Below are positions 12,401 through 64,000 of a stretch of 64,000 nt of DNA, one piece after another. The stretch spans positions 23,470 to 87,469 of the forward strand of contig MCFE01000359.1 in the NCBI GenBank assembly GCA_002104905.1, written 5' to 3'. Position 1 is the stretch's first letter; the number at the start of each line of letters is the position of its first letter. The DNA comes from Basidiobolus meristosporus CBS 931.73. Its lineage: Eukaryota > Fungi > Basidiobolomycota. A program made the translations under genes and the position numbers. The notes beneath the pieces were generated by a model, which saw nothing but the letters and a program-made list of their open reading frames with translations, was not told where the DNA came from and did no database searches.

Positions 12401-14199
12401 AACCGCAAGTTTTCTTTCAGGATGTCTGCAACTCCATCGAGGATTTTGGACTGGCGGGGATTCGATTCGTGTACTTCTCTTCCTCCGCTGAGCGAGAAAG
12501 CAAAGGTTCGTGGTTCGCCGGCGGTGTAGTATGGTGCTCCATCTGACCTTCTTTGTAGCGTTCGCCGAGAGGCTAGGACTGGAAACGGACTGGAACTCTT
12601 GTATTCTGTTGTCCTCGCCTGATGACGACGAGGGGGCTGGCTCCGGTTACCTGGAAACCCATGATATCAAGGCTCGACTCCCGCGTGGCATCGAGAACAT
12701 CCGTCCCCACCTGGAAAACGTGGACGATATCCCGTTGCACGTGTCTCTTTTTGCAGAGTGCAACCCCGATGCCGTTCGGGAGATGATCAAGATTTTCCAG
12801 GAATACGGCGAAGTGGTCTGTTGTGTCGGCAGCGCACTGAACTCCAATCACACCGGGGCATTTGCCAGTGTAAGTTCCCTGTCTTCAGCTGGAATTGAAC
12901 ATCGGACTGACCGAACACCAACATCCGTGGTTGTAGGCTGATATCAGTGTTGCCATCGAGCCGATGCATACTCGTTTTCAATCCCGCTCGCGCTCCTCCG
13001 AATCCAGACAGGTCCAATCCCCCTTCTCCATTGGCGCCGCCCTCACTAGCCTTCCATGTGCTTTGTTTTTACAACACGACACAAGTCTGTATGCCCTGGC
13101 TCAGGTCATCAGAGAGGCACGGCATCTGCTGAATGGGATTCGCCAGGTTGGACTCTTCTTGTCTCAAGTGCTGCTCCACGCGTGTCTAACCCTTGTCACA
13201 GGGGCTTGCCTTCGCGGCCTCCGCCCATCTAGCCATATCCCTATCGTTGCTCTTGTCTTATTGCTTCCTACAGCCACTGCTGTTCACTGGCTACCAAATC
13301 CTCTGGGTTCTGTGGATCATCTGCCCGATACTTGCCATATCGCTGCTGTTTTCGCCCCATGAGGCGAACACCATGACGCTTATGACAGGTAAGCTTCCCC
13401 GTGGGTGGCCAACATCGCTAGCGCCAAGGCTAACCGGTTTTCTAGGGAAAAACATAGAGCACCTGAAAGATTACTGGCGATATTTCTTCTACGCCATATC
13501 CCGGTTCCTGCTGACCGTGATACTCACCGTGTTGGTGTATATTTTGTAAGTAGCGATGAAACCAAGCACCGCGGTACCACTCGAGACTGACCATTTATGC
13601 CATGCCGGATCAGGTCACTGTATTATTTCGGGAACCGCACGAAGTCCGTCTTCAACTTCACCGATCGCACTAGCTGGACTCGTCTAGGACACGCGCAGCA
13701 GTGGGAACTGCAATACGCACAGAACTGCGCGCTGTTTGTTTTCGTTTGGAACACAGGTAGGATTCACGATGCGGGACGCTCGAACCCTTGGCTGACATGA
13801 ACCATTGATGTATAGTATGGATCTCGTCCACCTTCGTGAACCGTACGTCCTCCTTGAGGAAGTTCCCGCCCTACAAAAACGTAGTCTGGTTGATCTCGGC
13901 GGTGGTTTGGTAAGGATTCGGCAGTAGGCGGTACCTTGCATGCATACTTACCTGTTGCCATTCCTGTCACGAATAGTGTGATCCTCCAGGTGGTGTTCTG
14001 CGCGTTGTCTCTCCTCCGTGGGCCCATCAAACTCTCGGTGCTACCTTGGTTTGTGTACTTGATTGGCCTAGCGTCCCCATTGGTGGTGGTCCCGATTCAG
14101 GAGATAGTCAAGATGCACGACCGCAAGCAATTCGTTCGTTTCCAGAAGCGATCCAAACTGGAGTTCAACACGAAATTGGGCCTCCACTCGCCGCTGTAG
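9414..14199 (+). CDS. TMEM94: TMEM94/KIAA0195-like P-type-ATPase-related membrane protein (multi-exon; start uncertain)
   Basis: Segments LLVKGDIVEMRYGDVAPC, YGNAKILSLFE, CIGFSYRP, LPRGIENIRPHLENVDDIPLHVSLF..C.P....EMIKIFQEYGEVVCCVGS and C-terminal FNTKLGLHSPL match TMEM94 as I recall it. Confidence 0.8.
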
Positions 14200-48547: not shown

Positions 48548-48860
48548 TCTACAATCGCATGCAAAATTTCTGAATAAATTCAACACCAACTTCCATTGAT
48601 ACAACTGGGTACTTTTCGACCTTCCGGAACAATTGATCTTCAAAAGCTATGGCATGCTCATTTATTTACTCATATCTTTCCACAACGTTGTTAGCTATCT
48701 GGTGGTTAGTCTCATGGAGTTAAAAGCCTTTCCTCGCAGTAATCTATGATCCAGGCGAAAGGCATTCCTTCGTCGTCAGCGCCAGAAGGATGGTGTAGGG
48801 GGGGGGAGACAGTCACCAACAGGTGAAATCTTTATTTCAGTTGAAACAAAGAAGCCAGCG

Positions 48861-51627
48861 CTACTGTTGTAGCTTTGATACAAGAGTGTGTAGCTGAGGG
48901 GAATTTGTAGGTAAGTTAATAAGAAGTGATGATAGTTCTTTGGTGCTCAAGACACTGTTCAGTGGGAAGGGGGGTAGCAAGAGAGGTAAGAATGACTTGT
49001 GAACAACATTAATGAGGGGAATGTGATAAGGATTGATATTCATCATAAAGGGAGTGTGCTGCTGCAGATATTGCTGCCAAAGGTGTGTCAAGTACTTCAG
49101 GTAGGCCAGCTTGGGTTTTTCTGATTGCAGAATATAATGAGCAAACTTCTTGACTTCAGGATCTCCAAGTATAGTTCTCCAGCAGGAGCCAGGTGTAGTG
49201 TGGTGTGTTCTCTTCCATGCCTTGATCAGTGGGTTGTTGCAGTGGTGAAGTCTGAGATATAATCTGGTTCTAAGGTTGAGAAGTCTGATCTTATAGGGCA
49301 TAAACCCAAAAGCACCAAGAATAGCATGTCTGTAGGGGCATTCAGGCAGATGAGGCACCAAGGAGGTAATGCACCATACTGCAAACTTGTCAAGTTTAGT
49401 GCAGTCTCTAGAAGTAAGAGAAAGAAGTGGTAAGCCAAATTCCAGGACAGGAAAGACAAACTGCTTGAGTAGAAGGAGGCAGCTGGGAGCTGAAGTTGCA
49501 GGAGGAGTAACAGCCAGTAGCTTGTGGAGTGCCTGTCTTGCCAGGATAATTCTCTTCTTCAGGTGTGCTCCAGAGTCTAGTCCAGTAGGAAGGAAAGGAA
49601 AGCCAAGATATGTAGCAGAAACCTGAGCAGGCAGAGTGGAGTTCTCCAAGTTGATGGGACAGCCCAAAGGTACTGTCTTTGCAATGGAAAGCTGGAGATT
49701 ATTCTTCTGCAGATACTGGTGGATGGTTGGGAGTCTTGTTGCACATTGGAGGAAGATATTCTGATGTCATCAGCAAAGAGAGTAACCAGGTAGTCAGCTG
49801 AGAGTCTTGGGAAATCATTCAAGAAGATGGCAGACAGTATAGGACCAAGCACAGAGCCTTGAACCACTCCATTAGGAACTGAGAACACAGCTGATTGCTC
49901 ACTTGGGTGCAGAATTCTTGCTTGTGGATCCAGAAACAGAGACCTGACAAGGAGGGTGAGAGAGGTACTGGTGAAGCATTGCAACTTGGACCAAAGCAGA
50001 TTTCTGTCAACTGAATCAAAGGCCTTAGTAATATCAAACAGAACAGAGGGATACTTGCACTGGAGAGAGTGATCTTGGCTAAGTATGACTGCATATTCCA
50101 AGGAGAGGCCAGGAACAAATCCAAATTGTGCAGGGTGAAACTTGAGGGAGTCAGAGTAGAGCTCCTGAGCAAGCAGAAGCTCAAACACCTTTCTGCAGGT
50201 GGGCAGCAGAGATATTGGCCTGTATGAGCTAGGATCCAGGTGCTTTCCTTTACCCTTGTATAGTGGCAGAACATTGGCAAAGGACCATTCCTCAGGAGTA
50301 GAAAGCTGGGCTGAGCATTGCTGAAACAGTGGAAGCAGAAGTGCAGACATGGCCTTGGTATTAGTCTTCAGAAGCTCATAGGAGATTGTGTCCACACCTG
50401 GGGCAGTAGAGTTTGGAAGCATCTTGAGCACATTATGGATTCTCTCTTGATCAAGTGCAACTGGGATGGGCAGAGTCTTGAAGTCAGGATGAAAGCCAGG
50501 AGTTGAGTACTGCTTTGTAGAGAAGAAGATATTAGCCAGCTGTTCTGTTGAAGGTAACTTCCTGGAAGAGGGCCTCATTGCCCTGTAGAGTCTTGACACT
50601 GTTCTTGTTATAGAGTTGGAAGATTGCAGAGGCAAAGAACTCATAATATGGTCCCAGAGCTGAGTATGCAGAGTGTGGTGAATTGCCTTGGAGTGGTGTA
50701 TGGCTGTCAGGAGGAGTTTCTCTGTTTTTGGGTTAGGGAAACTCAGGTAGCTTTGTTGCAGGGCTGAAACAATAGATTCCCATTTTCTTGAGGTAACAGC
50801 AGTAGTCTTGCATGGCAGTGAGAGGGAGGCAGAGACCAGAATCAGATGCTTCACAAAGAGCCAGGCATAGTTGAGATCATCTGGCAGAGAAAGTTGCAAG
50901 CTGGCAAGCTTCAAGTAATCCCAAAGTCTTTCTTCTGATTCTTGGTAGCTTTGTGGGTGAGCACAGTAAGTTTTGGCAGCTTCTTCTTCACAACTGGTTG
51001 CATAGAAAGGGACCAGGCTGGGTGATCAGAGGCTCTAAAGGATCCTAGCTCAGCTCCAGAGAATTGCTTGACTTCATTCACAAAGTAGAGGGCAGCAGCA
51101 GAAGGGCAGATCCAGTCAACACATCTTTTCTCAGATTGAGCACCTAGTGCTAGCAGATGGCTTTCTCTCAGGAAGTTCAGTAGGAATGTAGACCTTGGCT
51201 TCATTCTTGCAGTCAGAGTAGTCTTGTTCTCAGGATGGGGAATGTTGAGATCTCCAAGCAAGATGACAGGTGCTGATATAGATTGCTGGTATTGCTGAAC
51301 TTTCTGGCAAACAACTTGCACTTCCTGAAGGGGGAGACTTGGAGGCAGATAGCAGAGCACCAGACTGATAGTTGGCAACTGGAGAGCAGCACAGTAAGGG
51401 GAGTAAAGAGGAACACAGAGCTGAGGAGTATTGATGGTAGAAGAGATGAAGCTGATAGAGGAGGTATTCTTTGTTATAGGAGTAGAAAAGCAATGAAGAT
51501 TAGTCAAAAGTGTAGAGGGTAGCTGGACATCAATCAAACACAGGAGGGAAAATCTTGAAAGAAGTCTCTCTAGAGTTGTTCTTGATGGCTGTATGCTGTT
51601 GCTGTTAAGTAACAGAACTTCAGGTAG
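48861..51627 (-). pseudogene. ORF2 of A1: APE endonuclease + reverse transcriptase, two frameshifts (~50911-51025 and ~49735)
   Basis: APE motifs LLNSNS, YLPP, GDLN, VDWI and SDH. RT motifs APGVD, YRPISLL, QFGF, DITKAFDSV, QGSVLGP, FADD and YLG. Confidence 0.9.
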
Positions 51628-52093
51628 TCAGGCAGAGGTTGTAGCTTCTTCAGAGGCAGCATTGACAATGTGACCTGCAGAGTCCCAGAGCTCTTCAAAT
51701 GGTGCATCACTTAAGTCAGCAAGGAGGGAAATGGCATGATTCTTGAGGAAGTATGCCACATCATAGGAGGGGGCTTGTCTCTTGATGGCAGCAAAGAAAG
51801 ACAGAATGGCAACATGGGCTGGAGGCTTGTTGAACAGTAGAGAGTCAGAGGATTCAGATTCTTCAGGCACTATCTTGAAGTCAGTTTTCAGCCAGTTAAG
51901 GTTCTTCTCCACAAAGGCTACAAATGGATCAGCAATGTTTTGGTCTAGGATAACCTCCAGAATCTTCCCTTTTCTCCAGGCCAGGTTGACAATTCTTGAG
52001 AGCTGAATATTGCATGCCTTAAGTGCTTTCCTGATGTTAGAAATGGGAGTCCAGGGAACTTGCTTCAAGTACACCACAGTCCAGGTAGAAGCT
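51628..52093 (-). CDS. ORF1 (gag-like, putative RNA-binding) of element A1; open up to the telomeric junction
   Basis: STWTVVYLKQVPWTPISNIRKALKACNIQLSRIVNLAWRKGKILEVILD aligns by eye with ORF 57912-58640. Confidence 0.75.
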
Positions 52094-52129
52094 GGGTTAG
52101 GGGGGAGACAGTCACCAACAGGTGAAATC
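52094..52129 (-). mobile_element. 36-bp stub consisting only of the type-A 3' terminus
   Basis: GGGTTAGGGGGGAGACAGTCACCAACAGGTGAAATC is identical to the A2/A3 ends and is immediately followed by TTAGGG. Confidence 0.85.
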
Positions 52130-52355
52130 TTAGGGTGTAGGTGTTATAGTAAGGGCTAGGAAAAGGTTAGAAGAGCAGGGGGTCTGGGGGACGCAGTCCC
52201 CTAGAGAATAAAAAAGCAGGGGGTTTGGGGGATGCAATCCCCCATACTGCTCCCATACTCTTTAAATTCCCTTTGATTCACTTTTCTTTCATTCTTGGTT
52301 CTGTTCCCTTAGGGTTACAATTCCTCCTCCTAACCCTTATCACCCTAACCATAAA
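52130..52355. repeat. Degenerate interstitial telomere-like and G-rich sequence
   Basis: ttagggtgtaggtgttatagtaagggctagg...ggttag; two copies of GCAGGGGGTYTGGGGGAYGCARTCCC; cttagggtta and cctaaccc/ccctaacc around 52306-52355. Confidence 0.55.
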
Positions 52356-52749
52356 TAATTTTACCCTACAATTGGCACATTGGCTGGTCATATAGTGGGC
52401 ATGTCTGAGCCAATATTTGTCTCCCTGCACATTCTGTATGCTCTGTTTAAGTCTTGATGATTATTTATTTAATAAATTGTTACTTTTAATGTATCTCTAA
52501 TAATTAATGGGAATCATCCCAATCTGGCCACAATCCCATATTTTGATAAGCTTCGGGCACCATAAATTGCGCGGCCCTAATATGATAAAAAAACTCATGG
52601 CCAATGCAAATTTTCTGTAACCCGATTGCTTTTACCAAATACAAAGTGTATCCCAAAGTTCAATATATATTATGGCTATAATAGAAACTTTATTTGACAC
52701 CATTGCAACTACTACTTGTGTTCCATGCACACATGTATCCTGCGAGAAT

Positions 52750-53090
52750 TGTAAAAACTTAGCCACGCAGTACAAAAGTGCTTTTATTTTTCATCATGAT
52801 AGTTTTACATGAGTTCCTAACGCACTTTCATAGTGCACGGTAACCATACCCCAACAGGTTTTAAGGATACCCACTTGCTATGTTTGCTTGTGTCTAGCGG
52901 GAGTCATCAATCATCAGCCACGTGGTAATAAAATGCTTTTATTTTTCATCACAATAGTTTTACATGAGTTCTAACGCACTTTTATAGTGCACGGTAACCA
53001 TACCCCCAAAAAGTAGTGTGGATGCTTACTTTAAACGCTTGCTTGTGTATTGTAGGGACTATCAACAAACAGCCACATAGGAATAAAACA
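52750..53090 (+). repeat. Diverged tandem repeat, ~155-bp period, ~2.3 copies
   Basis: tgcttttatttttcatca...agttttacatgagtt...ctaacgcacttt.atagtgcacggtaaccatacccc occurs at ~52779 and ~52935. The agccac...aaaa motif recurs three times. Confidence 0.8.
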
Positions 53091-53465
53091 TCCTAGAAAA
53101 GCATTGCTTTGTTGTTAGCAAGTATTGATGCGCAAATAGTGGTACTAAGTGAATTATTGAGTAACTATATACTCAAGTTGGTTCCAAGATATTCCTAGAC
53201 AATATGCTCAAAATCAATATTAGCATCAATAGCTTGCTCTTTGATCACTAAACCACCGCACCCAATATGCGGTGGCCTTGGTTTTGTCTAGCCGTTGAGG
53301 AATGAAACCAGAGTACAGTCACAAGAGAGGCAAAAGTGAAATGTGATGAAGTAAGTGTATATGAAAGTAATATAAATCTACAGGACAGAACAAAACAACT
53401 AGTAGTCAAACAGCACTCACAGACACTCCACGGAGTAGAGCACCAACACGGACAATAAACAAGCC

Positions 53466-53927
53466 ATGAGGGGAAAGGTTAAGGACCGCTACTTGGGGAT
53501 CAAGACCAAAAGAGGAAGCTGCCTCTACCAGAGCAGTCCTCGCACTCCAAAGGAAGACCAAGAGTCTACTATAGACAAAGATTGCGGCAAGAAAAGCAGT
53601 ACAATTACCAGTTCTGGTAGTGGTACCTTTGGAAGTCCTGAATACCTGGAGAAAAGTCGGAAAAAATTGGCAGATGACTCAGTTGTCCTGAGGAGAAAAC
53701 GAACCAATGCGATTGAGCAGTTCCAAAACAAACTTCAGCTTAGTTCTTCTTTGCCTCATTATAAAGTACTCCAAGTGGCTTATTTGGATTATAAGCGTAT
53801 GAAGGAGAGTCAGGCAGAGACTGATAAATTAAGTGATAGTCAATTGCATCACTTCTTAGATCTGGTAGAGAAACAGTTGCACAGCCAAGAGACGGAACAA
53901 CAATTGATGATTACAGAAACCAAATAA
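53466..53927 (+). CDS. Hypothetical protein (153 aa)
   Basis: ATG-started ORF only, no recognisable motif. Confidence 0.35.
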   Translation: MRGKVKDRYLGIKTKRGSCLYQSSPRTPKEDQESTIDKDCGKKSSTITSSGSGTFGSPEYLEKSRKKLADDSVVLRRKRTNAIEQFQNKLQLSSSLPHYKVLQVAYLDYKRMKESQAETDKLSDSQLHHFLDLVEKQLHSQETEQQLMITETK

Positions 53928-54084
53928 TTTTGCCAATGTAGTTTTGCATTTTAATAAAATAAAAGGGTTTTAATAAGAACAGAATAAAGTTAACTTATGT
54001 GTACATCAAATGATTCAATTACTGGCTAGATGGATGTTACGTAGGAGCAAGAAGCTCAGTAACCTCAAAGTAAAGATATGATGA

Positions 54085-54945
54085 ATGGGCCACCGACATC
54101 ATCCAAGAATGAGTATAAAAGTGGAGAAAGTGGACATAATCCTTCATAAAACAAGAAGCATGGAAGCAGGCAGTAGCCGGGTAGATGCTAGGAGTGAAGG
54201 TAGAGAACAAAGAGAGCAAGGAAGGGGACAAGGATGTGGAAGAGGACGCGGAACCGGGCGCGGAAGAGGAAGAGGGCAAGGAGGTGGCCAGATCCAAGAG
54301 GAGCGTGAAGGAGGTGTTGCAGCAAACGTGAATGATGCTGAGCAAGTTGCTGTAGTCACTACCAGGCGGCCGGTCAACCAAGTTTCCCAAGCATTGTCAG
54401 AGGTTTGACAAGAGCTTCCGGAATATAGGACAACATCGCACCATGAGATATTGCGTTGTATGTGCCAGGAGATTAAACAGAGGAGGGGTAATGTTGTAAA
54501 GCTAAATTGGGATATTGCTGGACTTCAAGCCCAGATTGATTTCAGTTTCCACCATTCTACTGAGGCATTAGTGGCACAAATGGTGGAAAAGTTTGCCCGC
54601 ATCAGGGCAAGCAATGAGCAGGGTGCATCTTCAGACCCAGGTGTACTTGCAAGCAACATTATTGGAGGGGATACTACTTCCTCCCTTGAACCTACCACAA
54701 GCCAAGAGACAAGAGCAGAATCCTCCACAACAATGAGAATGGCCCCCACGCAGGTTGATATGGAAGTGTGCAAAGAAGACGTGGAGAAGCAGAGTGGGGA
54801 TACTATAGGCCAACCAGATACTGTAATGGAGGCGGAGAGACCAAGTCATATTGTCATCTTAAAAATACCACAGGTTGATTCATCGCTATCACTTCCCCCA
54901 TCATCACTATCTGTGCCCTCATCACCACCGCCATCCTCTGGCTAA
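54085..54945 (+). pseudogene. Hypothetical RG-rich protein interrupted by one in-frame TGA (54406-54408)
   Basis: ORFs 54085-54408 and 54451-54945 are in the same frame with only one stop between them. Contains a GRGRGTGRGRGRG tract. Confidence 0.45.
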
Positions 54946-55136
54946 CTTGAGTAAATAAAGAATATCCACCATCCCAAATCAATGAATTGACAAGTAATAA
55001 GTTAAACTGATAAGATTGACGATTTACAGACTAATATATGTAAAGTATGTAGTACTTAAGAGCTTTCAAGTTGTGGTGTATTATCAAGTATTCACCGTCA
55101 CATAAATCACACAGCAGTTGTTGTATCCCTATCCCA

Positions 55137-57255
55137 ATGGCATTAGAAGCCAGCAGTTACAAGGAGCATCGGAAAAATTTTGGCGTTTACCTGGCGACGG
55201 TGGCAGGTGTAACAAAACGCAGCTATTGCTTGATGACCATTACCCCGTCTATGAGATACTTGCTATTATATGGAGGGTATTCTGTTGAGCACTTTCAATA
55301 CAGCAAAATATCCTTGCCTTATGATGAGTGTAGAGCTGAAGAAACATCCGGCTGTGGAATACTCTATGAGCCCAGCTCAAAGGTTCAAATGATTTACCTT
55401 GCAGATCTACACGGTGATGAAGACATTGCAGTGACAGTTCTCCCGACTCCAGACAATATATCAACTACAGAGGCAGCCAAAGAGGTGATTTTAATTGGCA
55501 ACAGCTGTGCTAGTGACCACGAGAATCTCTACATATATGGTGGTTTTGAGCTGAGCCGTAGAGAATACTCAGGGCAACATGAAAGTGCCAAAACACGGGG
55601 GAAAAAAGCGATACGAAGCAAGAGTGGGGAGAGTATCAATAGAAGACTGAGCAAGCTGGAGGTAATCACGTACAAAGATGGCAATGGAAGCTCCAGAGTA
55701 TTGGAGACAAGGCCGTTCTTGAATAATCCGGCAAATATACCTTCAGCAAGAGGTTGGGCAGTTCTTACATACGCATTTGATTGCTTATTCTTGCTGGGCG
55801 GCTATCCTACACCATCGGAACCACCTTATACTCAACCAAATGGGTGTTTTTTAAACAAGTTCTACTGTTTAAAATTGCAAACTGGTGATTGGGAAAGACG
55901 ATATGTACACTCAGCAATACAGGAGCTTGGAGAAAACTTTATTGCTGTGGTAAACGAGTATGGCAACCAAATTCAATACATCAATAATGCAAATGTTACA
56001 TTCACCTATGATGTTGATAATCTGATCTGGATTTACCCTCCCGATCCAAGTCAGGAAGAAATGAGTACAAAGCAGCTACTAGGGTGCATTCTTAATGAAT
56101 TGGCAGCAATCTCTCAGCGGCACAAGAGGGAAGGCAAAGGAAGTGCTGAGACTGAAAATATCTTGCGGCATAGTGCCCATGGTCTTACTGTCCCACTTAA
56201 GAACCATCAAGCATTTGGCATACGATGGCTGATGTATACAGAGGCCATCCATAAAGGAGCATTGCTTGCCAATTCCATGGGACTTGGAAAGACATTGCAG
56301 ATATTAAGTCTCATATTGGAGACACCTGAGCAAAGGCCAAATCTTATTGTTGTCACGCTTGGAATACTTCTCAATTGGGTGATGGAGATAAAGACAAAAA
56401 CAAGGATATCCGATGAAGAGCTTCATGTATTTCATGGAGAATTCCAAGCTATCAAGAAGTCAGATATGGAGACTAAGAGGATTGTGCTCACCACCTACCA
56501 CACACTATGTGTTGAAGCAAAGAACCCTGATTTGCCTATATGGAATGTGAAATTTGGCCAAGTAGTGGCCAATGAGGCAGATACAATTAAGAACTACAAA
56601 GGCGGTAGCTTAAACGCAGTGAGTAAAATTGATGGAGAATCCTTGATACTTGTCACTGCCACCCCATTCCAAAATGAGATTATGGATCTTTATTCATATT
56701 TCACATTATTCAATCTATGGGAAGGCATTCCAAAGGATTTCCATCAACTCCTACTTGAGGAGGCCAATGCAAATAGGCTAGTTGAATGGGTTGTTGAAAG
56801 ACTTGGCCCATTAATATTGAGACGCGTTCCAAAGTCGCAAATATTTGGAGAACGCGCAGTATCCATGCCTAGTATTCAAGAGCAGATTGTCTTGTGCCAA
56901 TTCTTGCCGGAGGAGCTGCAGGAGTACAAACAACTGCAGGGAAGTCTTCCAGAGGAAGTTGGTCGGATGGGTGCAAATACCTATTTGCGTCTGTACTCAT
57001 GCCATCCATATATGTATACCTGGAGCAGGAAGAGGAATTGACTGAAAAAAGCGGCTGATGTTAGCATTGTCCAAGATGTTGAGATGAGTGAGGATGATTT
57101 TCTACCTGAGATTGATGAGGATCTTGAGGCGGTTGCGGTTGAGGTTGAGGAGCAGCTTCAAGAGATTAATAGCGAAGAGGTTGACAGCTCATCCAACGTT
57201 CCATCTACTTCTGCACCAACTGCCATACGCACCAAAGACACCCCTACAATTGCCC
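55137..57255 (+). pseudogene. Kelch-repeat + SNF2-like ATPase gene, degenerate and 3'-truncated by the telomeric array
   Basis: Kelch-like LLLYGG, LYIYGG and SARGW..LFLLGG..LNKFYCL..QTGDWE. SNF2 LKNHQAFGIRWL, LANSMGLGKT, IVLTTY, VVANEAD and LVTATPFQNEIMDLYS. In-frame TGA at 57039-57041, and the frame runs into SINE B1. Confidence 0.75.
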
Positions 57256-57780
57256 TTAGGGGGAGGAAAGTCACCAAGTGGTGAAATCTTTATTTACTTA
57301 TGACAAGTATTTAAAGAAGCCAAGTTAATCTGAAGTTGTTCCTAGAAAGCTAGGTCTGAGAGATATCTTCCTGGTAAGCCAGGTCTGAGAGTTGAGAAGC
57401 TGAGTGTTACTGTATTTCCTAGTTAGCTAGGTCTGAGAGAGGTTTCCTGGAAAGCCAGGCCTGAGAGGTGAGAATCTGAGTACTTCTAAGGTGAGTTGTA
57501 CTGATTTGCGGTAGCTGAATTGTGGCCCAGATGGCCAGAAGACTGGGGGAACTGAGGTGAATTTCTGGGCAATCACTGGCCAAATTTACTAGGCAAATCT
57601 GACCAATTAGCATTTCAAGGATTTTAGCCAATCAGAGCCTTTACTTTGCCCAATGGTTGATCAAGCCATCTCCCAATGAGCACACATCAATTTATTGATC
57701 AAATTTTGTTGGATCCAGGATTTGAACCCACAACCATGGGTATGGAAGGGTTAGGGATAACCACAAGGCTAAGTGTTCTT
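57256..57780 (-). mobile_element. Telomeric tRNA-derived SINE type B, full-length copy B1
   Basis: Non-coding ~525 bp. tRNA-like A/B boxes at its 5' (telomere-facing) end and the shared 3' signature. Confidence 0.85.
57718..57778 (-). promoter_or_regulatory. Internal Pol III type-2 promoter of SINE B1 (A box 57761-57771, B box 57718-57728)
   Basis: Minus strand reads GAACACT-TAGCCTTGTGG...GGTTCAAATCC with tRNA-like spacing. Repeated at 61631-61691 and 62158-62218. Confidence 0.75.
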
Positions 57781-58751
57781 GGTTAGGGGAGGGAAAGTCA
57801 CCAAGGTAGGTGAAATCTTTATTTGATTTCAGACAAGTCTAACTACAAATAAAGAAGCCAGCTGGGAATAGAAGATTCCCAAAGTAAACACTAAGTTGAA
57901 TATAAATAAATCTAAGCTAAAGTTAAAGCAGTATCCCAGAGGACACTGGAGTTCAGGTTCATGGGGGAGTGAAGTAGATAAGCTTGAGAGATGTAATAAT
58001 CTTTGAGGAAGTGGGTAACAGCAGGTGAAGGAGAGTTTTTGATAAGTGAAGTGAATCTTGAGAGCAGAGATTCCTCTAATGAGAAGGTCTTGTAAACTGG
58101 AGAATCAGGAAACTCTTTAAAGGCATGGTCAGTAGGTTCCCAGTAAAACTGGTCAGAGACATTTTGAGAGAATTGCTCAGCAATACTTTTGTCAAGTACT
58201 ACCTCCAGAGTGTGATGGTTGATAAATCTCATGTTAACAATCTTGGATAAATTGTAACCTTGTTGCTTGAGATACATCCTATGTTCAGATAGAGGAATAA
58301 ATTCCACATTGGCAAAATAGCAGACAGCCCAGTCAGTGGCAGGAGGCAAATTAGAGGTGGCAGGAAACTTTCTTTTAGTCTTGAGAGGAGCAGCAGGATG
58401 TCTTGAGGAAGCAGGAACAGGCTTTTTGACAGCTTCAGAGTAGGAAGAGTGAGCAGGAGCAGATGGTTCTTGGGGAGTCTTGTTGACAGGAAGAGTTGGC
58501 ACAGGGACAATAGATTCTTGCAGATCAGAGAACGCAGAAAACAGCTTTTGAACTTGTTTCTTGAGTAGAGCATTTTCAGCTTCAACAAGTGCAAGCCTTT
58601 CCTCAAGGAAAGAAATCTGAAGGGAATGGAGTGAAGGCATAAGAAATAAGAGGAAGAGAGTAGTATGGGGTGGGTGGGAGGGAAAATTAGCAGGGAGAAG
58701 AGAAGGAAGGAGAAAAATTCCAGAAGTCAGAATTTATAGATGGATGGACAA
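57781..58751 (-). mobile_element. Telomeric ORF1-only non-autonomous retroelement type C
   Basis: One 242-aa ORF, ~110-nt pyrimidine-rich leader and 130-nt 3' UTR ending in the shared 3' signature. No RT. Confidence 0.8.
57912..58640 (-). CDS. ORF1-like protein: N-terminal coiled coil + domain homologous to type-A ORF1
   Basis: LEERLALVEAENALLKKQVQKL heptads. WAVCYF...LSKIVN...LEVVLDKSIAEQF...SPSPAVTHFLKDYYIS parallels A1 WTVVYL...LSRIVN...LEVILDQNIADPF...APSYDVAYFLKNHAIS. Confidence 0.8.
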   Translation of the reverse strand: MPSLHSLQISFLEERLALVEAENALLKKQVQKLFSAFSDLQESIVPVPTLPVNKTPQEPSAPAHSSYSEAVKKPVPASSRHPAAPLKTKRKFPATSNLPPATDWAVCYFANVEFIPLSEHRMYLKQQGYNLSKIVNMRFINHHTLEVVLDKSIAEQFSQNVSDQFYWEPTDHAFKEFPDSPVYKTFSLEESLLSRFTSLIKNSPSPAVTHFLKDYYISQAYLLHSPMNLNSSVLWDTALTLA

Positions 58752-58756
58752 GGGTA

Positions 58757-60670
58757 GGGTTAGGGGGGGAGACAGTCACCAACAGGTGAAATCTTTATTT
58801 CAGTTGAAACAAAGAAGCCAGCGCTACTGTTGTAGCTTTGATACAAGAGTGTGTAGCTGAGGGGAATTTGTAGGTAAGTTAATAAGAAGTGATGATAGTT
58901 CTTCAGTGCTCAAGACACTGTTCAGTGGGAAGGGGGGGTAGCAAGAGAGGTAAGAATGACTTGTGAACAACATTAATGAGGGGAATGTGATAAGGATTGA
59001 TATTCATCATAAAGGGAGTGTGCTGCTGCAGATATTGCTGCCAAAGGTCTGTCAAGTACTTCAGGTAGGCCAGCTTGGGTTTTTCTGACTGCAGCATATA
59101 GTGAGCAAACTTCTTGACTTCAGGATCTCCAAGTATAGTTCTCCAGCAGGAGTCAGGTGTAGTGTGGAGTATTCTCTTCCAGGCCTTAATCAGTGGGTTG
59201 TTGCAGTTGTGAAGTCTGAGGTATAATCTGGTTCTAAGGTAGAGAAGTCTGATCTTATAGGGCATAAACCCAAAAGCACCAAGAATAGCATGTCTGTAGG
59301 GGCATTCAGGCAAATGAGGCACCAAGGAGGTAATGCACCATACTGCAAACTTGTCAAGCTTAGTGCAGTCTCTAGAAGTAAGAGAGAGAAGTGGTAAGCC
59401 AAATTCCAGGACAGGGAAGACAAACTGCTTGAGTAGAAGGAGGCAGCTGGGAGCTGAAGTTGTAGGAGGAGTAACAGCCAGTAGCTTGTGGAGTGCCTGT
59501 CTTGCCAGGATAATTCTCTTCTTCAGGTGTGCTCCAGAGTCTAGTCCATTGGGAAGGAAAGGAAAGCCAAGATATGTAGCAGAAACCTGAGCAGGTAGAG
59601 TGGAGTTCTCCAAGTTGATGGGAGAGCCCAAAGGCACTGTCTTTGCAATGGAAAGCTGGAGATTATTCTTCTGCAGATACTGGTGGATGGTCTGGGAGTC
59701 TTGTTGCACATTGGAGGAGGATATTCTGATGTCATCAGCAAAGAGAGTAACCAGGCAGTCAGCTGAGAGTCTTGGGAAATCATTCAGGAAGATGGCAAAC
59801 AGTATAGGACCAAGCACAGAGCCTTGAAACCACTCCATTAGGAACTGAGAACACAGCTGATTGCTCACTTGGGTGCAGAATTCTTGCTTGTGGATCCAGA
59901 AACAGAGACCTGACAAGGAGGGTAAGAGAGGTACTGGAGAAGCATTGCAACTTGGACCAAAGCAGATTTCTGTCAACTGAATCAAAGGCCTTAGTAATAT
60001 CAAACAGAACAGAGGGATACTTGCACTGGAGAGAGTGATCTTGGCTAAGTATGACTGCATATTCCAAGGAGAGGCCAGGAACAAAGCCAAACTGTGCAGG
60101 ATGAAACTTGAGGGAGTCAGAGTAGAGCTCCTGAGCAAGCAGAAGCTCAAACACCTTTCTGCAGGTGGGCAGCAGAGATATTGGCCTGTAGGAGCTAGGA
60201 TCCAGGTGCTTTCCTTTACCCTTGTACAGTGGCAGAACATTTGCAAAGGACCATTCCTCAGGAGTAGAAAGCTGGGCTGAGCATTGCTGAAACAGTGGAA
60301 GCAGAAGTGCAGACATGGCCTTGGTACTAGTTTTCAGAAGCTCATAGGAGATTGTGTCCACACCTGGAGCAGTAGAGTTGGGAAGCCTCTTGAGCACATT
60401 ATGGATTCTCCTTTGATCAAGTGCAAGTGGGATGGGCAGAGTCTTGAAGTCAGGATGAAAGCCAGGAGTTGAGTACTGCTTTGTAGAGAAGAAGATGTTA
60501 GCCAGCTGTTCTGTTGAAGGTAACTTCCTGGAAGAGGGCCTCATTGCCCTGTAGAGTCTTGATACTGTTCTTGTTATAGAGTTGGAAGATTGAAGAGGCA
60601 AAGAACTCATAATATGATCCCAGAGCTGAGTATGCAGAGTGTGGTGAATTGCCTTGGAGTGGTGTATTGC
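58757..60670 (-). mobile_element. Type-A retrotransposon copy A2 (5'-truncated, RT only, frameshifted at ~59826 and ~58935)
   Basis: Near-identical to A1/A3. RT split between ORFs 59780-60610 and 58903-60246. Confidence 0.92.
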
Positions 60671-60687
60671 TTAGGGTTAGGGTTTAG
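60671..60687 (+). repeat. Interstitial telomeric tract TTAGGG-TTAGGG-TTTAGGG
   Basis: Seen directly between A2 and B2. Confidence 0.9.
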
Positions 60688-61054
60688 GGGGGAGGAAAGT
60701 CACCAAGTGGTGAAATCTTTATTTACTTATGACAAGTATCTAAAGAAGCCAAGTTAATCTGAAGTTATTCCTAGAAAGCTAGGTCTGAGAGATATCTTCC
60801 TGGTAAGCCAGGTCTGAGAGTTGAGAAGCTGAGTGGTACTATATTTCCTAGTTAGCTAGGTCTGAGAGAGGTTTCCTGGAAAGCCAGGCCTGAGAAGTGA
60901 GAATCTGAATATATCTGAGCTAAGTTATACTGGTTTGCGGTAGCTGAATTGTGGCCGGAATGGCCAGTAGACTGGGGGAACTGAGAGGAATTTCTGGGCG
61001 ATCACTAGCCAAATTTACTAGGCAAATCTGGCCAATTAGCATTTCAAGGATTTC
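60685..61054 (-). mobile_element. SINE B2, 5'-truncated (~370 bp)
   Basis: Matches B1 from the 3' end up to ...caaggatttc, then TTAGGG. Confidence 0.88.
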
Positions 61055-61153
61055 TTAGGGGGAGGAAAGTCACCAAGTGGTGAAACCTTTATTTACTTAT
61101 GACAAGTATCTAAAGAAGCCAAGTTAATCTGAAGTTATTCCTAGAAAGCTAGG
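61055..61153 (-). mobile_element. SINE B3, 5'-truncated (~100 bp)
   Basis: 3' signature through the first hairpin (...aaagctagg), then telomeric repeats. Confidence 0.88.
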
Positions 61154-61172
61154 GTTAGGGTTAGGGTTAGGG
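61150..61172 (+). repeat. Interstitial telomeric tract (TAGGG)(TTAGGG)3
   Basis: Seen directly. Begins on the SINE's own TAGG. Confidence 0.9.
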
Positions 61173-61693
61173 GGGATGAAAGTCACCAAGTGGTGAAATC
61201 TTTATTTACTTATGACAAGTATCTAAAGAAGCCAAGTTAATCTGAAGTTATTCCTAGAAAGCTAGGTCTGAGAGATATCTTCCTGGTAAGCCAGGTCTGA
61301 GAGTTGAGAAGCTGAGTGGTACTATATTTCCTAGTTAGCTAGGTCTGAGAGAGGTTTCCTGGAAAGCCAGGCCTGAGAAGTGAGAATCTGAATATATCTG
61401 AGCTAAGTTATACTGGTTTGCAGTAGCTGAATTGTGGCCAGAATGGCCAGTAGACTGGGGGAACTGAGATGAATTTCTGGGCGATCACTGGCCAAATTTA
61501 CTAGGCAAATCTGGCCAATTAGCATTTCAAGGATTTCAGCCAATCAGAGCCTTTACTTTGCCCGATGGTTGATCAAGCCATCTCCCAATGAGCACACATC
61601 AATTTTATTAATCAAATTTTGCTGGATCCAGGATTTGAACCCACCACCATGGGTATGGAAGGGTTAGGGATAACCACAAGGCTAAGTGTTCTT
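61170..61693 (-). mobile_element. SINE B4, full length
   Basis: Complete from the 3' signature to the tRNA head ...ctaagtgttctt. Confidence 0.88.
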
Positions 61694-62220
61694 GGTTAGG
61701 GGGAGGAAAGTCACCAAGTGGTGAAATCTTTATTTACTTATGACAAGTATCTAAAGAAGCCAAGTTAATCTGAAGTAATTCCTAGAAAGCTAGGTCTGAG
61801 AGATATCTTCCTGGTAAGCCAGGTCTGAGAGTTGAGAAGCTGAGTGGTACTGTATTTCCTAGTAAGCTAGGTCTGAGAGAGGTTTCCTGGAAAGCCAGGC
61901 CTGAGAATTGAGAATCTGAGTATATCTGAGGTGAAGTGTACTGATTTGCAGTAGCTGATTTGTGGCCGGAATGGCCAGTAGACTGGGGGAACTGAGGGAA
62001 ATATCTGGGCGATCACTGGCCAAATTTACTAGGCAAATCTGACCAATTAGCATTTCAAGGATTTCAGCCAATCAGAGCCTTTACTTTGCCCGATGGTTGA
62101 TCAAGCCATCTCCCAATGAGCACACATCAATTTATTGATCAAATTTTGTTGGATCCAGGATTTGAACCCACAACCATGGGTATGGAAGGGTTAGGGATAA
62201 CCACAAGGCTAAGTGTTCTT
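61694..62220 (-). mobile_element. SINE B5, full length
   Basis: Complete copy. Internal variants differ from B4, so it is not a simple tandem duplicate. Confidence 0.88.
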
Positions 62221-63950
62221 GGTTAGGGGGGGAGACAGTCACCAACAGGTGAAATCTTTATTTCAGTTGAAACAAAGAAGCCAGCGCTACTGTTGTAGCT
62301 TTGATACAAGAGTGTGTAGCTGAGGGGAATTTGTAGGTAAGTTAATAAGAAGTGATGATAGTTCTTCAGTGCTCAAGACACTGTTCAGTGGGAAGGGGGG
62401 TAGCAAGAGAGGTAAGAATGACTTGTGAACAACATTAATGAGGGGAATGTGATAAGGATTGATATTCATCATAAAGGGAGTGTGCTGCTGCAGATATTGC
62501 TGCCAAAGGTCTGTCAAGTACTTCAGGTAGGCCAGCTTGGGTTTTTCTGACTGCAGAATATAGTGAGCAAACTTCTTGACTTCAGGATCTCCAAGTATAG
62601 TTCTCCAGCAGGAGTCAGGTGTAGTGTGGAGTATTCTCTTCCAGGCCTTAATCAGTGGGTTGTTGCAGTTGTGAAGTCTGAGGTATAATCTGGTTCTAAG
62701 GTAGAGAAGTCTGATCTTATAGGGCATAAACCCAAAAGCACCAAGAATAGCATGTCTGTAGGGGCATTCAGGCAAATGAGGCACCAAGGAGGTAATGCAC
62801 CATACTGCAAACTTGTCAAGCTTAGTGCAGTCTCTAGAAGTAAGAGAGAGAAGTGGTAAGCCAAATTCCAGGACAGGGAAGACAAACTGCTTGAGTAGAA
62901 GGAGGCAGCTGGGAGCTGAAGTTGTAGGAGGAGTAACAGCCAGTAGCTTGTGGAGTGCCTGTCTTGCCAGGATAATTCTCTTCCTCAGATGTGCTCCAGA
63001 GTCTAGTCCAGTAGGAAGGAAAGGAAAGCCAAGATATGTAGCAGAAACCTGAGCAGGTAGAGTGGAGTTCTCCAAGTTGATGGGAGTGCCCAAAGGTACT
63101 GTCTTTGCAATGGAAAGCTGGAGATTATTCTTCTGCAGATACTGGTGGATGGTCTGGGAGTCTTGTTGCACATTGGAGGAGGATATTCTGATGTCATCAG
63201 CAAAGAGAGTAACCAGGCAGTCAGCTGAGAGTCTTGGGAAATCATTCAGGAAGATGGCAAACAGTATAGGACCAAGCACAGAGTCTTGAACCACTCCATT
63301 AGGAACTGAGAACACAGCTGATTGCTCACTTGGGTGCAGAATTCTTGCTTGTGGATCCAGAAACAGAGACCTGACAAGGAGGGTGAGAGAGGTACTGGAG
63401 AAGCATTGCAACTTGGACCAAAGCAGATTTCTGTCAACTGAATCAAAGGCCTTAGTAATATCAAACAGAACAGAGGGATACTTGCACTGGAGAGAGTGAT
63501 CTTGGCTAAGTATGACTGCATATTCCAAGGAGAGGCCAGGAACAAAGCCAAACTGTGCAGGATGAAACTTGAGGGAGTCAGAGTAGAGCTCCTGAGCAAG
63601 CAGAAGCTCAAACACCTTTCTGCAGGTGGGCAGCAGAGATATTGGCCTGTAGGAGCTAGGATCCAGGTGCTTTCCTTTACCCTTGTACAGTGGCAGAACA
63701 TTTGCAAAGGACCATTCCTCAGGAGTAGAAAGCTGGGCTGAGCATTGCTGAAACAGTGGAAGCAGAAGTGCAGACATGGCCTTGGTACTAGTCTTCAGAA
63801 GCTCATAAGAGATTGTGTCCACACCTGGAGCAGTAGAGTTGGGAAGCCTCTTGAGCACATTATGGATTCTCTTTTGATCAAGTGCAAGTGGGATGGGCAG
63901 AGTCTTGAAGTCAGGATGAAAGCCAGGAGTTGAGTACTGCTTTGTAGAGA
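62221..63950 (-). mobile_element. Type-A retrotransposon copy A3 (terminal, 5'-truncated; RT frame open, QGS changed to QDS)
   Basis: ORF 62287-63858 is continuous through the RT core and abuts the terminal telomere tract. Confidence 0.92.
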
Positions 63951-64000
63951 GGGTTAGGGTTAGGGTTAGGGTTAGGTTAGGGTTAGGGTTAGGGTTAGGG
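63951..64000 (+). repeat. Terminal telomere (TTAGGG)n
   Basis: About 8 tandem TTAGGG units (one TTAGG variant) running to the end of the window with the G-strand 5'->3' outward. Confidence 0.95.

Follow-up and report, generated by a model that had tools for sequence, protein, structure and literature searches.

A short repeat at a chromosome end of Basidiobolus meristosporus CBS 931.73 is probably a non-autonomous short interspersed element (SINE), copied in trans by a telomere-directed long interspersed element (LINE) that encodes an APE-type endonuclease and a reverse transcriptase (RT), and carrying a head of RNA polymerase III (Pol III) type that would derive from tRNA-Gly(UCC). The DNA analysed was a 64,000-nucleotide stretch of contig MCFE01000359.1 (the window). 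The window represents a chromosome end, its plus strand terminating in a (TTAGGG)n telomere tract (63951..64000).

SINE copies, partner LINE and shared 3' module

One copy of the SINE was searched against the window by BLAST. Exactly five copies were recovered, all on the minus strand and all 6.8 kb or less from the chromosome end, with none in the remaining 57 kb. Three are full length: S5 (61696..62222; 527 nt counting the 5' CC), S4 (61167..61695; 529 nt, its 5' end abutting the S5 tail) and S1 (57256..57782; its 3' end joined to unique DNA at 57255). The other two are 5'-truncated: S3 (61055..61153; 99 nt, element positions 429-527, telomere repeats at its 5' side) and S2 (60684..61054; about 372 nt, element positions 158-527, its 5' end abutting the S3 tail). 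Truncation points differ between copies and the 3' ends are complete. The full-length copies share 95-96% mutual identity, and adjacent copies diverge by 4-5%. Further copies in L002 and L080 adjoin CCCTAA repeats in the same orientation; among them is a fourth full-length SINE with an identical 5' end (L080:6622-7149, B. meristosporus assembly). All four full-length copies begin with CCAAGAACAC immediately after ...CCCTAA.

The SINE is non-coding. Its longest open reading frame (ORF) is 70 aa with a TTG start, and it encodes neither RT nor endonuclease; both come from the neighbouring LINE. No copy has poly(A). A length of 527-529 nt in multiple copies fits a short retroposon (<~700 nt). A sequence-only reading of the window had described five copies, three of them full-length, of such a short SINE with a LINE-type 3' end, specialised for chromosome ends. 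The count was reproduced by BLAST, the head sequence quoted there is present in the window as written, the LINE-type end was borne out by a tail of 40-53 nt in common with the LINE, and the specialisation by the restriction of copies to telomeric arrays (window, L002 and L080).

From the tip inwards, the minus-strand order is telomere repeats, LINE copy B, S5, S4, 2.5 telomere repeats (61154-61166), S3, S2, 2 telomere repeats (60671-60683), LINE copy A, an ORF1-only element, S1 and unique DNA. Orientation is uniform: in all elements of the terminal array, and in a buried LINE and a tail fragment further inwards, the C-rich strand is the sense strand and the 3' ends face the centromere.

Copy B of the partner LINE (62223..63950, minus strand) is 5'-truncated and comprises the RT, the C-terminal part of ORF2 and the 3' module. 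Copy A (58760..60680, minus strand) is truncated at another 5' point and is 98-100% identical to copy B. The ORF1-only element (57783..58757, minus strand) is non-autonomous, with a 242-aa ORF and the same 3' module. The older buried LINE (48802..52097, minus strand) retains an ORF1 remnant, APE and RT with frameshifts, and a 35-nt tail fragment lies beyond it (52097-52131). Top protein matches of the local RT were B. meristosporus CBS 931.73 gene models (92-96% identity), and in a comparison aimed at assigning the LINE to a clade the RT matched human L1 ORF2p best (E 6e-11). The APE domain gave no PDB sequence match, Atlas and Pfam label the LINE as generic APE+RT only, and no homologue of the ORF1-only protein was found in the protein database. 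Across 57256-63950 (minus strand) the sense strand of the SINE, LINE and ORF1-only element is strongly G-poor (G 13-17%); the plus-strand GC skew of these elements, +0.25 to +0.30, differs from the rest of the window.

The last 40-53 nt of the SINE match the tails of the LINE and the ORF1-only element at 86-88%. All three tails carry a pair of hairpins with CCUCCCCCUAA after them. At its base hairpin 1 pairs CUUCUUU with AAAUAAAG, hairpin 2 is UCACC-N4-6-GGUGA (N4 in S5), and after it comes a single-stranded pyrimidine stretch ending CCCCCUAA. In S5 the module, comprising both hairpins and the single-stranded CUUUCCUCCCCCUAA end, occupies 61696..61760 (minus strand). Relative to shuffles, folding of the module gave z -3.4 for the SINE, -4.2 for the LINE and -2.1 for the ORF1-only element. 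Diverged LINE families of other public assemblies (52-79% protein identity) terminate in this module too, with telomere repeats following in each case. Such a pattern is the usual mark of a stringent LINE, the RT of which recognises its own 3' structure, and of a SINE copying that structure. LINE-dependent and telomere-directed retroposition of the SINE is therefore well supported.

In its 5' ~475 nt, upstream of the tail, the SINE showed no resemblance to the LINE, to the ORF1-only element or to the full-length LINE relatives in L072-L079, so it is composite and not an internally deleted LINE. Full-length SINE heads were also sought beside the related LINEs in L072-L079 (other assemblies), and tails only were found. 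Further tail variants with the same 3' module and other hairpin-1 tips occur at L001:15068-15142, L003:6111-6185 and L072:452-526, an indication that further families of elements share this RT recognition module. In the body of S5, 61775-61921 (element positions ~302-448) contains an internal ~76-nt duplication. It carries four short, nearly palindromic hairpins (CCTGG-N4-CCAGG or CCTAG-N4-CTAGG in type), and CTCTCAGA stands ahead of every one.

The tRNA-like head and its transcription

The head of S5 occupies 62146..62218 (minus strand; element positions 5-77), and those of S1 and S4 ~57706-57778 and ~61619-61691 (minus strand). As decayed SINE heads are often missed by general tRNA models, comparison was made with real tRNA genes. 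A tRNA panel was collected by scanning metagenomes with two 9-mers of the head that the sequence-only reading had pointed out, GTGGTTATC and ACCCTTCCA, separated by a gap of 3-6 nt. This returned 68 loci, 16 of which were called by ARAGORN as tRNA-Gly(UCC) with the TCC anticodon within the second 9-mer; by a rough estimate, the other matches are about the chance number for such a collection.

Alignment of the head to tRNA-Gly(UCC) begins at tRNA position 1 (element position 5) and takes in the anticodon loop. In this 5' half 27-28 of the 34 aligned columns are identical, and the alignment resumes at the T loop. The match to tRNA position 1 is in sense orientation and lies only 4 nt from the invariant 5' end of the SINE. 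When the window was tiled against tRNA-Gly(UCC), the three heads scored best, with local scores of 19 (next 17) and glocal scores of 13-15 (next 10). A calibrated profile based on sequence alone and built from six distinct tRNA-Gly(UCC) genes also placed these heads ahead of every other match in the window, at 11.7-12.4 bits (E 0.007-0.013). When the 85-nt head was shuffled with its dinucleotides kept, the real score was reached in 5 of 20,000 cases (local) and 2 of 20,000 (glocal), and ten other tRNAs from the same loci scored below tRNA-Gly(UCC) against the head. The next profile match in the window, at 12695-12732 (minus strand; 9.6 bits, E 0.056), carries no tRNA call and is probably due to chance.

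Within the head, an A-box-like TAGCCTTGTGG (62201..62211, minus strand; element positions 12-22) differs by one mismatch from TRGCNNAGTGG. A perfect B box, GGTTCAAATCC, lies at 62158..62168 (minus strand; element positions 55-65) with counterparts at 57718-57728 and 61631-61641. The two boxes start 43 nt apart and are intact in S1, S4, S5 and L080, that is, in 4 of 4 full-length copies.

These alignments suggest homology of the head to tRNA at modest significance. The head probably derives from a tRNA-Gly(UCC) gene, the structure of which would have decayed with only the promoter-like elements kept. The 5' end keeps a constant place 11 nt before the A box, which is compatible with initiation by Pol III, and transcription of the SINE by Pol III is inferred from the sequence features of the head.

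A stretch of 1.5 telomere repeats, CCCTAACCC, is present in the head (62190-62198; element positions 25-33). At this site tRNA-Gly(UCC) genes have TCCCACCC or TCCAACCC, one or two changes from the telomere repeat. The same CCCTAACCC occurs within LINE ORF2 (50730-50738) and in the related LINEs of L072-L079.

A number of results weigh against a tRNA-derived, Pol III-transcribed head. ARAGORN called no tRNA in the window or in L001-L003, and Rfam gave no tRNA at E<=10, neither in 8 kb nor in a 131-nt slice. Folding of the 93-nt head was at shuffle level (z -0.24). On inspection the acceptor, D and anticodon stems of the head cannot pair, so that no cloverleaf is formed, and a tRNA-Gly model with the cloverleaf imposed gave E about 0.1 with the T arm deleted. 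The tRNA panel itself was fetched with a pattern taken from the head. The profile margin of the heads over the best chance match is only 2-3 bits with a rough E calibration, and the shuffle p becomes about 0.005-0.01 after allowing for ~45 isoacceptors. A tRNA-Gly(UCC) gene of the same genome was sought by comparing own and relatives' contigs with a yeast-type tRNA-Gly locus at 80% likeness, and no match was found. Among the few copies available, body positions 90-210 are as well conserved as the head; head conservation was accordingly rejected as a sign of constraint. On the sense strand downstream of S4 and S5 no T4 terminator occurs for 2.4-2.9 kb. Two features are compatible with RNA polymerase II (Pol II): in the SINE, the LINE and the ORF1-only element alike AAUAAA precedes the 3' end by ~35 nt, and Y-box/CCAAT-like CTGATTGGCTG and CTAATTGG lie in the SINE body (62065-62075 and ~62042-62049). 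The latter are kept in S1, S4 and L080, sit in the most conserved part of the body and may serve in a Pol II promoter or in the binding of a protein.

The claims of the sequence-only reading about the head fared unevenly. An A-box-like element and a B box at tRNA spacing were confirmed at positions 12 and 55 in all three full-length copies of the window. The fungal tG(UCC) motifs that it cited are real, since the head specifically resembles authentic tRNA-Gly(UCC) genes. Its derivation of the head from tRNA-Gly(UCC) stands as regards the specific alignment to authentic genes and fails as regards the cloverleaf and a general tRNA call; similarity to tRNA under a covariance model, the absence of which it had named as a refutation, was found neither by ARAGORN and Rfam nor, at a significant score, by the cloverleaf-imposed model. 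Its statement that the sense strand lacks the terminator TTTT is true of S1, S4 and S5 (the antisense strand has 1-2), and 3-5% of shuffles likewise lack it. The missing TTTT counts for little because the LINE is also TTTT-poor (1 in 1728 nt), and it was rejected as an argument for Pol III as non-discriminating.

Alternative explanations and insertion at chromosome ends

Most of the contrary results would suit a different account, possible in our view but somewhat unlikely, in which the element is a LINE-dependent telomeric element, its tRNA likeness is functionless (chance or a dead relic), and Pol II, or read-through out of a neighbour in the manner of HeT-A, supplies its RNA. In HeT-A, a promoter in one element drives the next. 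The lack of a tRNA call and of a cloverleaf, the kilobases of array without a terminator, the AAUAAA in every element type and the retention of CTGATTGGCTG and CTAATTGG among copies are all expected on this account, the TTTT paucity is common to the LINE, and the B-box consensus alone is unremarkable, with 0.87 chance matches expected per window and one unrelated match present. What it leaves as coincidence is that the match is specific to tRNA-Gly(UCC), is in the sense orientation and places tRNA position 1 so close to the invariant 5' end. The AAUAAA also forms the base of hairpin 1 and its role may therefore be structural, and poly(A) is absent from every copy.

Two further accounts concern the origin of the copies. 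Unequal recombination or segmental duplication of the subtelomere, which would make the element a satellite-like repeat and not a mobile SINE, draws on the fact that subtelomeres do duplicate: block 52131-57255 has a 95.9% identical paralogue (L080:7150-12154, B. meristosporus assembly) beside another SINE copy, and ~499-nt units in L001 could be tandem duplicates. This is very improbable given the varied 5' truncation points with complete 3' ends, the different neighbour or telomere repeats beside each copy, the 4-5% divergence of adjacent copies, the uniform orientation and a tail matching one that belongs to an element with RT. That the element is an internally deleted LINE (SIDE-type) and not a composite SINE is scarcely credible. 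The ORF1-only neighbour is itself of SIDE type, and its 5' start closely resembles the sequence directly after the LINE tail at the end of contig L073; the first ~475 nt of the SINE, by contrast, are unlike any of the LINE sequences compared, and its 5' end CCAAGAACAC differs from the ORF1-only-type start TGTCCATCC/TGCATCCATCC. Both ends of a SIDE come from the parent LINE, and here only the tail of the SINE matches.

Junctions within the array were then read for the mode of insertion. Within an episode of insertion, elements are joined directly, the tail ...CCCCCTAA being followed by CC and then by AAGAAC of the next SINE. One element junction has no spacer at all, and the junction of the ORF1-only element with LINE copy A contains nine telomere-like bases, CCCTACCCT. 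Each episode closes with a 5'-truncated element and then telomere repeats. These junctions would fit a series of additions at a free end as well as jumping of the RT between templates. S1 adjoins unique DNA without a telomere repeat. The paralogue of block 52131-57255 extends 33 nt past the S1 junction point before its contig ends, from which it follows that S1 caps a truncation inside an SNF2-like pseudogene; the junction is consistent with healing of a broken end.

The orientation of the SINE and its CCCCCTAA terminus fit cDNA priming from a TTAGGG 3'-OH. Under the preferred reading, a SINE copied in trans by the LINE, the head would keep its A-box-like element and B box and so let Pol III start at the invariant 5' end. 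The predicted transcript is a ~0.5-kb sense RNA starting at CCAAGAAC/GAACACT. The RT of the LINE would bind the 3' module of this RNA, the terminal CCCUAA would pair with a TTAGGG 3'-OH, provided either by the natural G-strand end or by an APE nick, and cDNA synthesis would then lengthen the chromosome end.

A more far-reaching proposal, which we consider decidedly doubtful, is that the SINE does more than parasitise the telomeric LINE and serves as a regular component in building Basidiobolus chromosome ends, added endonuclease-free to free 3' ends, a Pol III-driven analogue of HeT-A acting beside telomerase and able to heal broken chromosomes. The tail-to-head chaining of full-length copies with only CC between them would then stem from end additions or template jumping, and CCCTAACCC in the anticodon-stem region would re-seed telomerase or the next priming.

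Relation to known systems and further features of the window

Partnerships of SINEs with LINEs are well known, and so are LINEs that target telomeres; a SINE restricted to chromosome ends was not found in the literature search. Such an element is of interest to transposon and telomere specialists. Among fungal systems, MoTeR1/MoTeR2 of Magnaporthe oryzae include a non-autonomous companion and short telomere-repeat tracts between elements, in both respects like the Basidiobolus array. MoTeR and FoTeR elements belong to the restriction-like-endonuclease (CRE/SLACS-type) group, and their companion is derived from the autonomous element. Here, unlike in MoTeR/FoTeR, the endonuclease of the LINE is of APE type and the head of the companion is foreign and tRNA-like. 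The likeness to MoTeR1/MoTeR2 and to the FoTeRs of Fusarium oxysporum is that of fungal telomere-targeted non-LTR elements (PMC12857005).

In the SINE-LINE pairs of zebrafish and eel, a 3' stem-loop is recognised by ORF2p (PMC4176376). The Basidiobolus SINE resembles tRNA-derived SINEs with stringent LINEs in being short and non-coding, with a tRNA-like head carrying A and B boxes, an unrelated body and a ~50-nt tail that is copied from the partner LINE and folds into a conserved hairpin (PMC4176376). Unlike these SINEs, its tail ends in the telomere-repeat complement CCCCCTAA and not in a microsatellite or poly(A), it is confined to chromosome ends, and it has no target-site duplications and no terminator in its usual context (PMC4176376). 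Inheritance of the strict target specificity of a LINE partner is shared with crocodilian SINEU-3/Tx1-Mar; SINEU-3 differs in its snRNA-derived head and its target, a DNA transposon, where the head here is tRNA-like and the target is the telomere (PMC4494074).

With HeT-A and its partners TART/TAHRE of Drosophila the system has in common terminal arrays in which elements follow one another head to tail and point their 3' ends to the centromere, reliance of a non-autonomous member on an RT-encoding member, and additions at chromosome ends, including broken ends (PMC5537684). The SINE is non-autonomous, as are HeT-A and MoTeR2. HeT-A differs in being 6 kb long, encoding Gag, being made by Pol II and replacing telomerase repeats (PMC5537684); here telomerase-type repeats coexist with the elements, and the SINE is 0.5 kb and non-coding. 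TRAS1/SART1 of Bombyx mori are likewise APE-type LINEs that insert into telomeric repeats in one orientation only, and the 3' ends of their RNAs interact with the repeat targeted (PMC7265360, PMC2868851). Poly(A) tails are theirs and not those of the present elements, and no SINE partner of TRAS1/SART1 was found in a literature search. Telomere-targeted non-LTR elements are known in insects and fungi (TRAS/SART, HeT-A/TART, MoTeR and FoTeR; PMC7265360, PMC5537684, PMC12857005). No SINE specific to telomeres was found in the literature search, and none is named in a review of chromosome-end retrotransposons (PMC4700185).

If the preferred reading is correct, a target-specific LINE can hand its telomere specificity to a Pol III-type passenger, and the recruited tRNA gene is one whose anticodon-stem region lies one or two changes from the telomere repeat. 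Basidiobolus is an early-diverging fungus. Its chromosome ends would be a mixture of telomerase products and retroelements, made out of three cooperating elements, and would offer a tractable system outside the insects in which to study the sharing of chromosome ends between retroelements and telomerase.

The remainder of the window was also surveyed. Ordinary genes fill it up to ~48 kb and include a P-type ATPase, a kinase, CDC20, a kinesin and amino-acid transporters. Block 52131-57255, which is flanked on both sides by retroelement arrays, carries a helicase-like pseudogene with SNF2-N only (ORF 55071-57041, in-frame stop at 57039-57041), the frame of which is open up to the SINE junction at 57255. 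At L001:11480-13292 three 5'-truncated LINE 3' ends lie in a row, first a longer one and then a tandem pair of ~499 nt each. Both ~499-nt units start at one base, GATCAGAC, directly after CCCTAACCCTAA, where the LINE itself has CCCTATAA; these may be microhomology-guided 5' joins or tandem duplications.

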